NCBI GenBank assembly: GCA_964270895.1
Contig: OZ185437.1
Direction: 5' to 3' (one strand)
Origin: Podarcis filfolensis
Lineage: Eukaryota
DNA: 64,000 nucleotides
Part shown: positions 50,929-59,873 of the stretch, piece by piece
Numbering within the stretch: position 1 is the first letter of the stretch
Layout of the letters: every line of letters begins with the position of its first letter
Program-made: the position numbers and the translations under genes
Notes under the pieces: generated by a model
The model's input: only the letters and a program-made list of their open reading frames with translations
Told to the model about the DNA's origin: nothing
The model's database searches: none

Positions 50929-51080
50929 AGTAGTTTTTGGCAATTGTAATGGTATCGCAATGGTTGATTACGTCCAAAAGACCACACTTTTAAACCTTGG
51001 CACCGTTGAATTGTATGGTTCTAATGATCCTTATAGGAGGGAACCCCGATCTCCACGTAAAAGCAGACAGCCATCTGGAG
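50929..51080 (+). CDS. STXBP5: STXBP5 exon (~18), 152 nt: VVFGNCNGIAMVDYVQKTTLLNLGTVELYGSNDPYRREPRSPRKSRQPSG
   Basis: Acceptor ttttctttcag, donor GAG|gtaagg; phase 2 to 1. Confidence 0.96.
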
Positions 51081-53690: not shown

Positions 53691-55802
53691 TGCAGTAACC
53701 ACAATACACCATTCTTCCACAGCAGGAAGAATGTGAAAGAAGTAAAAGTGTAGTGAGAACATGCTTCTTCCCCCAAGTGTTTGGGGATATATGTCTCTGC
53801 TTCAAATGCCATGTTTAATGTGGCACACTTCCTGTGAAGGTCATTGGTTGAGTATTGGCTCCACCTGGTGGTTGAAGGTGGGAACAGAACTTGTGGGAAG
53901 TAGGCAGCTCCTAGTTGATTCTTGCCTTCATCAAAGTAGTCACATTGCTTTTGAGCTCCTGTTCTTTCTCTTCTCAGGTTTTCTAAATTCCACTTTTTCT
54001 TCTTTGTTCCAGTGTTTGCCTTCCTCTTCACTGTTTCTAAGCCATCCCATTCTCCCTTCAGTATACCAGGGCAGTATGGTTGTCACTCCTAACCTTTTCT
54101 CCTCTTCATGACTGCTCCAGCACTTTCTTCTCTCAGCCTGTCTCTTGTCACTTGAGCCCGTCTTTCTTGGCTGTTTTCTACATTCTTTGCTGCCTGCATC
54201 TCTCCCATAAATAGAACCCCTTTGCCTTGCCTTTTTTCTCTCTCCTGATTTCACCAGTAACTGCTTCAGTGGAGGATGGAGGCAGGTTTGTTGGTATTTG
54301 AACCTCGGCAATTCTTCTTAGCTGTTTTGGACCACTGCACCTTCTGGTTTGGTGTGTGCTATGTATCCATGCCCCAGCATTCTGGCTTTCTGAAGAGTAG
54401 GGATGGCAGTCAGTGTGCTCTCTGGTGGCAATAGCCACGCCTCCTGCCCAAACTCAGCCTTTGAATAAACTTAAAGTGCCTGCTAAGGCAGCTTTTCCTT
54501 CTTCCTCTAAATGTAAGACCTTTGCTCGGCATTTGCCTCATAAACAAGCACTAAGCATCTCATAGGCAGCCCTTATCCATGGAAAGGGATGAATCCATTT
54601 ATTATATCTGTGGACATTCTGGACCCTTAACAACATTTGCCTTCACCATTGCCTGGGCCTGATGGGTTTTATCTCTCATGACTCCCACTATGTGCCTTTG
54701 CTCTGCAATGGCCTTAGACTTCATTGCCCTCCTGCAGAACCTACCTCAGCACCATTTAAGGGGGCATCTGTTCTTGTTGAACCAAATTCCTTTACAAAGT
54801 CCATACCATTTCCTTCTACGTTTAAAAAAAATCCTGAAGGCAGAGAGGGACTCTGCCTCCTTGTAGCATAAAAATATGTTTCATAGTTAATTAATACTAT
54901 AGTTTAGAGCCTATTAGTAGAGGTTCAGTAAACTGCTGTCTCCTTGGGCCTGGGCTTATTGTACACCGTTCCTTGATTTCTGTTCTTACCTGGGTCCTTC
55001 ATAAAATCAGGGAGGAAAAGCCACAGTGGTCCTTTTAGCTTCCTTCTGGCCTTGACATCTGTGGCCGTTGGAGATCCTGATCATGGCAGTATCTCCATGG
55101 CACCCTCTTGCTGTCTGGATGTCTGAACTGCCTACTTCTCACAAGTTCTGTTCCTGCCTTTGACCATCAGAGATGGAACCAATATTCAACCAATAACATT
55201 CATCAGGCACTGAAGATCTGCTCTTCTGGTAGTAACCAATGGAACTTTTTGTGTACTTATATGCAATTATGAATTACTATAATAGCCACATGGAACACTG
55301 CAAATGTTTCAGATATAAACTGCAATATTCCATGAATTACCACTTCGTAATGGTTGTAAAACTATTTATGGCTGTTGAATAAGCAGCACTTCTGGCTCTT
55401 CCTACCTACCTTTCCTGGTAGTTCCATATTGAAGATGGTTAAATAATTGTAGTTGTATTAAAAGAATAAGTACAAGTAAGTCTGGCTATTTTATAATGTT
55501 ACTAATATATTCTCTTAAATGAAACAGTTAAACAGCTGAGTAGGGATAGGTTTGTTTTGTCATTAAATTGTTAGTAGTATTAATGGGAAATTTTATAAAT
55601 ATTACGTAAGACAACAAGTAAATTATATTACACTGTGTGAATTCTGGCACATGCATGATTTGTTGTATTTCAGTTGGTGTCTAACAATTTCCCACAAATA
55701 CATTGTTTGCTTGGGTCTTAAAGTTTTTCTGCAGATTTTTTTTCTTTCTCCAAATATACTGTGTTGGTGTTTTTGTCTTTCCTTTCTCATTGCTTCAATA
55801 AG

Positions 55803-55886
55803 GCATGCTGGCTGTGGCTTCTTGCATGTGTGGCCTCTCTAACTTATATTCAGAGTCTGTGAAAAAACTTCGCACCTCTTATATAA
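55803..55886 (+). CDS. STXBP5: Putative STXBP5 alternative cassette exon, 84 nt: (G)MLAVASCMCGLSNLYSESVKKLRTSYI(T)
   Basis: Strong pyrimidine tract gtttttgtctttcctttctcattgcttcaataag, donor ATAA|gtaagt; phase 1 to 1, stop-free, length divisible by 3; resembles the recalled STXBP5L exon peptide DNFCMRGLSNFYPDLTKRIRTSYQ. Confidence 0.75.
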
Positions 55887-57129
55887 GTAAGTCATCTCAT
55901 AAGAATAAAGTGTTTTAACATCCAGTTGATTAGGTTATATGCATTCATCACCCTGAATATTTTACCATAGCCTTTACTTTTCAGCTTCTTTCACTAACAT
56001 ATCGGCAGAGATTAATTATATATTAATATAATTATAGACTGTTACCTGAGATACTATCAATATGGAATATTGGGTACAATAAGATCCAGATTACATCCTT
56101 CATCTATTTTGCAAGCAACAGTAAAAAAGTGGCATTAGTAGATAATAGAATACAAGTCACAAATGTGCAGTAGTGCCCACAAATGTGCACAAATGCGTGC
56201 AGTGGTGTCCACAAAGACCTTCATTGGTGCCCTTGGACAAAGGACCAAGACTCTGAACTTTCCTTTTTATTTTTAATAAAAAAGTAAATCTCTAACCCTC
56301 CTGGAAAGAAAGTTATGAAGCAAAAATGTATGGGTACCCTTCTAAGCAATTTCTGTGAAATGAGCTAGCCTGGCTGCCTCTGTCAGTGCTTTTTAGCCAG
56401 CGAGTGAAGTCAGAGCTGTGATTGTTGAGTGTGTTGTATGGACACCAGACAATATTAGCATTGGTATTACAGTTAATTTATTAATCACCTTCTAAACCAC
56501 TGTGATTTACAAGGTGATTATAAAATAATTTAAAATGGTTAAAAACACAAAAACAAATCAATTTAAAGCAAACCTAAAACTTGTTATAAAGACCCATTTA
56601 TCCAGCTGGGAAAGCCTTCTGTTTCTCCTTTCCAATTAGTGCATTTTTCCTGCTTGTCTTATTTGCTAGTAGTCCCTGGAGTCTCCGAAGTTTATCCTTC
56701 CTTTTTCCCTAGTGACCAGGATGCATCTTTCTTGTGGTGGGTTCTCCTGAGATCAGATACTGCCTAGAATTTATTTTCTGCAAATACTTCTACACAATGT
56801 GTGGGTGAATTTTAAAGCATCCCCTCCCTAAATGGCAAAATTCAAAACGTGAACTTTGCGAAAGAGGCTTAGGCGTGTCTCCTGCTGTGCTGGACTTAAA
56901 GCCAGGCACTCATTAAGAATTCACTGTATAGTTAAATTATGATACAATATTATAGAGGTCGCACGTTTCAGTCAAGTAAAAGTGACCTTAACTGTTCTTG
57001 GGGTGCAAGTGCAGACATGTCTGAACTACAAAGGTGTAATTGCAAATGGCAGGGTAGAAGATGACCCAATAGGGTGTGTACTGGCCCCAGTATTGTACTG
57101 TGCATTTCTTAAAATTTCTATCTCTGTGT

Positions 57130-59807: not shown

Positions 59808-59873
59808 CAGGTCTTTGTGATATTAATGAAGGTACAGCTGTACAAGAGGATCGTTGCAAGTCACCCACCTCAG
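59808..59873 (+). CDS. STXBP5: STXBP5 exon (~19), 66 nt: (A)GLCDINEGTAVQEDRCKSPTS
   Basis: Acceptor tttacag|cag (NAGNAG), donor CAG|gtaatg; phase 1 to 1; matches human AGLCDISEGTVVPEDRCKSPTS. Confidence 0.94.

Follow-up and report, generated by a model that had tools for sequence, protein, structure and literature searches.

Does an 84-nt segment inside an 8.7-kb intron of the lizard Podarcis filfolensis represent an exon, and if so, of what kind? The segment, referred to here as exon X, lies in a 64,000-nt window (the whole stretch of DNA that was analysed) within STXBP5, the gene for tomosyn-1, which acts as a brake on neurotransmitter release. Its splice signals, reading frame, conservation and resemblance to a known exon of a paralogous gene are considered here. 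Taken together they make it very probable that exon X is a genuine, ancient and frame-preserving exon of STXBP5, most likely a cassette, and the counterpart of the 'xb' exon of tomosyn-2 (STXBP5L).

Comparison of tomosyn proteins with the window (tblastn) identifies 14 exons of one gene, ordered on the + strand and together covering the protein from approximately residue 48 up to where the hypervariable region begins. The constitutive exon upstream of exon X is 88-92% identical to tomosyn-1-type representatives versus 64% to squirrel STXBP5L, and the exon that follows the intron is likewise of the tomosyn-1 type. The gene is therefore STXBP5. The positions of the two neighbouring exons, which delimit the host intron, and of the elements of exon X are collected in Table 1.

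Table 1. Exon X and its neighbours in the window (a slash marks an exon/intron boundary)
Feature	Coordinates	Strand	Description
Upstream constitutive STXBP5 exon	50929..51080	+	Ends RKSRQPSG; CAG acceptor, GAG/GTAAGG donor, phase 1 end
Acceptor region of exon X	55770..55802	+	Pyrimidine tract 55770-55788, 14-nt spacer with TGC (55791-55793), then AAG; acceptor AG 55801-55802
Exon X, candidate STXBP5 cassette	55803..55886	+	84 nt, phase 1 to 1; 27 complete codons, with a split codon at each junction
Purine-rich core of exon X	55853..55868	+	16 nt, GAGTCTGTGAAAAAAC
Donor of exon X, GTAAGTCA	55887..55894	+	GTAAGT at 55887-55892; last exon base A versus consensus G
Downstream STXBP5 exon	59808..59873	+	GLCDINEG...CKSPTS; 66 nt, phase 1 to 1, CAG acceptor; first of the hypervariable-region exons

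Direct reading of the window bears out the initial annotation's account of a stop-free, phase 1 to 1 segment with a pyrimidine tract, a TGC and a GTAAGT donor. The last base of the upstream exon, 51080, is the first position of a codon (CCA TCT GGA G/gtaagg) and position 59808 opens with the last two bases of one. Read in the frame of the upstream exon, exon X is free of stop codons and the downstream frame stays intact. The skipped form reads PSG-A-GLCDI with an Ala junction codon (G/CA); the included form reads PSG-G, the 27 codons at 55805-55885, and T-GLCDI, with Gly (G/GC) at the 5′ junction and Thr (A/CA) at the 3′ junction. The peptide is inserted between RQPSG and GLCDI as had been proposed, with the correction that the two junction residues also change, Ala being replaced by Gly and Thr. 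An in-frame TAA directly precedes the acceptor, which limits the free-standing ORF to 37 aa; as this is shorter than the 60-aa default cut-off, exon X is missing from the ORF list, which accounts for its having gone uncalled in the ORF track. Chance occurrence of such a segment was assessed over the 64-kb window with a filter comprising an AG and a GTAAGT, a span of 60-150 nt, a length divisible by three, an open phase and a pyrimidine-rich tract upstream. A single candidate is obtained on the + strand, which is exon X, and none on the - strand.

The peptide encoded by exon X was compared with 150 tomosyn representatives by local phmmer. Only three matches fall below E 0.1, a partial STXBP5 of the toothfish Dissostichus eleginoides (P0075, E 2e-7), an stxbp5l-type protein of the fish Coilia (P0057, E 5e-6) and STXBP5L of the squirrel Sciurus carolinensis (P0042, E 5e-4), and all three sit straight after the same upstream exon. 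The core common to both paralogs is C-M-x-x-L-S-N-[LF]-Y-x-x-x-x-K-[KR]-[LI]-R-x-S-[YH]. A homologous STXBP5L exon at the same position had been named in the initial annotation; the 24-residue peptide quoted there is found verbatim in the squirrel protein, and the phmmer result supports the homology. In STXBP5L one junction residue also changes on inclusion, the phase in that gene being inferred from protein junctions and not from DNA. Since position, split-codon arrangement and significant sequence similarity match in both paralogs, the exon predates the STXBP5/STXBP5L duplication, in agreement with the ancestral origin first suggested for it.

The xb-specific cassette exon of tomosyn-2 is attributed to Groffen et al. 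2005, as cited in PMC3188574, and mouse NM_172440 represents xb-tomosyn-2 (PMC10495110). The tomosyn-2 exon is alternative (PMC3188574). Like exon X, it directly follows an exon ending in SPRK..Q/..PSG, opens the hypervariable loop, and has the core CM..LSN.Y....K..R.S[YH] and the same split-codon phase as judged from its junction residues. In contrast to exon X, with 84 nt (28 aa), it is 72 nt long (24 aa), and the N-terminal thirds of the two peptides are unrelated. It is also present in curated transcripts and in most teleost predictions, whereas exon X is absent from the recognised s, m and b forms of tomosyn-1. The paralogous exon occurs in 107 of the 119 best teleost stxbp5l isoforms; a word search with a fish stxbp5l query returns teleost stxbp5l isoforms only, and a gecko STXBP5L fragment (P0114) represents the skipped form. 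A tomosyn-2-like protein of 744 aa (P0065) continues after the upstream exon as KSKQ-LAADNFNMKAVS, with an xb-like start (ADNFCMRGLS) that then diverges. This segment may be a degenerate or read-through version of the xb exon.

Orthologous genomic DNA was obtained by comparing a 50-aa query from the upstream exon with 1.84 billion representatives, the matching read-through ORFs leading to the contigs that encode them; each exon served singly as a query. The comparison set for exon X comprises five species: the lizard, a second tetrapod (L003/L004, Logan contigs from runs SRR13336340 and SRR13336339), and three teleosts, namely the toothfish (L002, GCA_031216635.1, CM062275.1) and the species of contigs L007/8 and L009/10. 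Three more contigs (L005, L006 and the mammal-like L011 of 1.1 kb) hold the upstream exon but end before reaching the position of exon X. In the second tetrapod a copy of exon X lies approximately 1.6 kb past the upstream exon. Alignment of positions 49-58 kb of the window with L003 yields three blocks only (E 1e-53 to 1e-75), one for exon X and one for each of the constitutive exons, and the introns outside these blocks of exon and flank do not align. Exon X is identical at 80 of 84 positions (95%), and its frame is retained together with the GTAAGTCA donor and the AAG acceptor. The upstream flank is 95% identical across the adjacent 20 nt and 90% across 40 nt, the downstream flank 85% across 20 nt. 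The aligned block thereby extends over approximately 225 nt for an exon of 84 nt and reaches further into the introns than the block of the constitutive neighbour. Conserved intron flanks are the pattern usual for regulated alternative exons.

The length of exon X is the same in all five species if the shared acceptor position is used. Also common to all five (window, L003, L002, L007 and L009) are the A at base -3, the displaced pyrimidine tract and a donor of the form A/GTAAGTCA. The purine-rich core is identical throughout, even at five synonymous positions; this invariance suggests a constraint at the RNA level beside the coding constraint, and the core is suggestive of a possible or even likely exonic splicing enhancer. 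A pattern of the exon with 29 specified bases gave no matches in a metagenome scan. In the other teleost paralog, the corresponding 2.4-kb intron of Coryphaenoides rupestris (L012:5986-8373, PIJE02001594.1) contains no recognisable exon X, and the exon can therefore be lost. The exon-bearing teleost paralog is typed by LLLNMGTSELYSPS, and the upstream exon of the Coryphaenoides paralog is of the VVLNL/LLLNLSTVELYGSNDP type. The two teleost stxbp5 copies may have split isoforms between them.

Substitutions in exon X were counted over codons 5-27 by the method of Nei and Gojobori. Between lizard and fish dN is 0.13-0.25 and dS 0.8-1.0, giving a dN/dS of about 0.14-0.3, and between two fish species dN/dS is 0.16. 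For example, between lizard and toothfish approximately 9 of 17 synonymous sites differ, versus 6 of 52 that are non-synonymous, so that synonymous change is in excess (Fisher p about 0.001). Serine codons vary among TCA, TCT, AGC and AGT and leucine codons among TTA, TTG and CTT across the copies of exon X. Such codon swaps indicate that the protein is conserved, and not the RNA alone. The dN/dS check proposed at the outset thus finds conservation at the codon level, and the lizard-fish comparison places the predicted peptide under purifying selection. The four differences between the lizard and the second tetrapod, two synonymous and two non-synonymous and including a change of L to P in the basic motif, are too few to show selection.

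Tomosyn-1 is described as having three isoforms (s, m and b) and tomosyn-2 four (s, m, b and xb) (PMC3188574, PMC3948876), and mouse Stxbp5 has four curated transcripts (PMC10495110). In the tomosyn literature searched, the name 'xb-tomosyn' is not applied to tomosyn-1 and exon X is not described for it. With respect to that literature exon X is new for tomosyn-1; its xb counterpart in tomosyn-2 and the toothfish STXBP5 model are already known. A transcript contig of another tetrapod (P0004/L001, Logan SRR24113106) skips exon X and has the junction PSG/AGLCDI. This tomosyn-1 cDNA contig (L001:1-3393) contains two ORFs of 372 aa and 601 aa approximately 170 nt apart, a mid-transcript break in the frame for which intron retention, an exon missing from the annotation or faulty assembly may be responsible. 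The sole instance of inclusion is P0075, a gene prediction by the submitter of the toothfish genome, and the extra-long isoform proposed in the initial annotation is a putative one in tetrapods. Relative to the acceptor position common to the remaining four species, the acceptor used in P0075 lies upstream by 18 nt (L002:10729-10830) and adds the six residues VSEFDK. It is a genuine alternative 3′ splice site or else a choice of annotation.

A word search with the toothfish exon region returned the query alone among proteins of 319-1015 aa and two fish genomic read-through ORFs only in the range of 100-318 aa. In tetrapods, exon X was found in none of the proteins or transcript ORFs of 100-1015 aa, a size range below that of full-length RefSeq/Ensembl isoforms (>1015 aa). 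The view of exon X as 'hidden' holds for tetrapod proteins within this range and fails for the toothfish, the model of which contains the exon. It is probable that exon X sits in some automatic tetrapod isoform model.

In both neighbours of exon X the acceptor is CAG and the pyrimidine tract adjoins it; exon X itself has an AAG acceptor and a tract ending 14 nt before the AG. Judged by its sequence, the exon X acceptor is made suboptimal by the A at -3. A weak acceptor and a terminal A, offset by a perfect GTAAGT, form the anatomy of an exon predicted to require an activator. In neural exons of the SRRM4/nSR100 class the 3′ splice site is weak, the pyrimidine tract lies at some distance from the AG, and the spacer between them contains a UGC. 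Exon X resembles these exons in all three respects but differs in having a single UGC that occurs only in the two tetrapods. The UGC at -12 to -10 is present in the lizard and L003 and absent in L002, L007 and L009; it is one trinucleotide, with a probability of about 1/5 of arising by chance in a spacer of approximately 15 nt. The SRRM4/nSR100-type UGC pointed out in the initial annotation is thus confirmed near the acceptor of two tetrapods, but its absence from all three fish means that the link to SRRM4 remains a guess.

Control of exon X by SLM2/T-STAR/Sam68 was also considered and rejected, the number of UWAA motifs per 200 nt being 3 upstream and 4 downstream versus a window median of 3. 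The Stxbp5l target repressed by SLM2/T-STAR and Sam68 is an exon of 171 nt with dense flanking UWAA (PMC5397175); given this length it is not the xb exon. It shares with the cassette proposed here the character of a regulated neuronal exon in the hypervariable region of a tomosyn gene, but its flanks are dense in UWAA whereas those of exon X are at background. An AT-rich patch at 55403-55602, 200-400 nt upstream of exon X, stands at the 99th percentile for the window with 12 U(U/A)AA motifs per 200 nt. This patch lies outside the block conserved with L003.

Other explanations of the segment have to be set against these observations. Exon X could be constitutive in squamates or in sauropsids generally, and look hidden only as the mammalian b, m and s isoforms are without it. 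Intact splice signals with a perfect GTAAGT donor are what such an exon would show, but the acceptor is weak, and conserved as such, where both neighbours have CAG; the intron flanks are conserved further out than those of the neighbouring constitutive exon, a tetrapod cDNA contig skips exon X, and the paralogous tomosyn-2 exon is alternative (PMC3188574). Constitutive use is accordingly unlikely. The conserved weak acceptor, the conserved flanks and the skipping in the cDNA of another tetrapod are the grounds on which exon X is inferred to be alternative.

A relic, used formerly as an exon but not now in this lineage and open by chance, would account for the lack of inclusion in tetrapod protein and transcript ORFs of 100-1015 aa, and it would fit the apparent loss of the exon in one teleost paralog; in a short exon, moreover, an open frame is cheap. 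However, two tetrapods with otherwise unalignable introns have kept the frame, the splice sites, the 84-nt length and approximately 40 nt of flanking intron, the segment is as well conserved as the constitutive exons, and the comparison with fish points to purifying selection on the peptide. A relic is for these reasons highly improbable. The 16-nt core, invariant even at synonymous sites, is a feature that speaks for a conserved non-coding element of the intron, such as an enhancer or an RNA structure, in which the open frame is a coincidence. Outside the core, though, substitutions are mostly synonymous or codon-swapping; conservation ends at the canonical AG and GT, and at the same position the paralog has a known coding exon for a homologous peptide. 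A non-coding element is scarcely credible on this evidence. The original reading as a tomosyn-1 coding exon is the one upheld by the splice signals, the frame, the conservation in five species and the signature of purifying selection.

As a cassette exon of STXBP5, exon X would on inclusion lengthen the hypervariable loop by 28 residues at its very beginning, upstream of S724 and K730. In this loop a PKA site (S724) and a SUMO site (K730) tune the inhibitory strength of tomosyn (PMC3948876, PMC3188574). The s, m and b cassettes of tomosyn-1 are comparable in that they belong to the same gene and the same loop, preserve the frame and add or remove regulatory sites (SUMO at K730, PKA at S724; PMC3948876). 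Unlike exon X, which lies upstream of the GLCDI exon, they are located downstream of 59873, and their sequence is unrelated. Two features of the exon X peptide had been singled out as potentially functional. The palmitoylated CxC is poorly supported because the cysteine pair is not conserved across the five species: the second Cys is present only in the two tetrapods, and the first is replaced by Tyr in L009, which leaves that fish without any Cys. The basic KKLRTS fares better. Both paralogs retain the stretch K-[KR]-[LI]-R-x-S, in which the Ser, two residues past the Arg, is invariant, and for this reason a kinase site is a plausible candidate. Together, the hydrophobic LSN[LF]Y and the K-[KR]-[LI]-R-x-S-[YH] after it could plausibly form a short docking or basophilic-kinase motif. 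A motif of this type would tune the regulation of tomosyn and not its SNARE-binding core.

The inhibition of synaptic-vesicle and insulin-granule fusion by tomosyn-1 is well studied, and the protein is used as its m, b or s isoform in rescue and overexpression experiments. The stakes are modest in that a regulated cassette in a disordered loop is a known kind of exon, the paralogous twin is already known, and exon X may be present in automatic predictions. More tentatively, it is possible that exon X defines a fourth, 'xb-type' tomosyn-1 isoform of the age of bony vertebrates that has been missed by curated annotation and by all functional work, with LSN[LF]Y...K[KR][LI]RxS acting as a regulatory switch of both tomosyns, for example through phospho-dependent docking where the loop begins. 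Exon X adjoins the known PKA and SUMO switches of this loop, and the retention of the exon by both paralogs over >400 million years implies that the additional segment of tomosyn-1 has a function.
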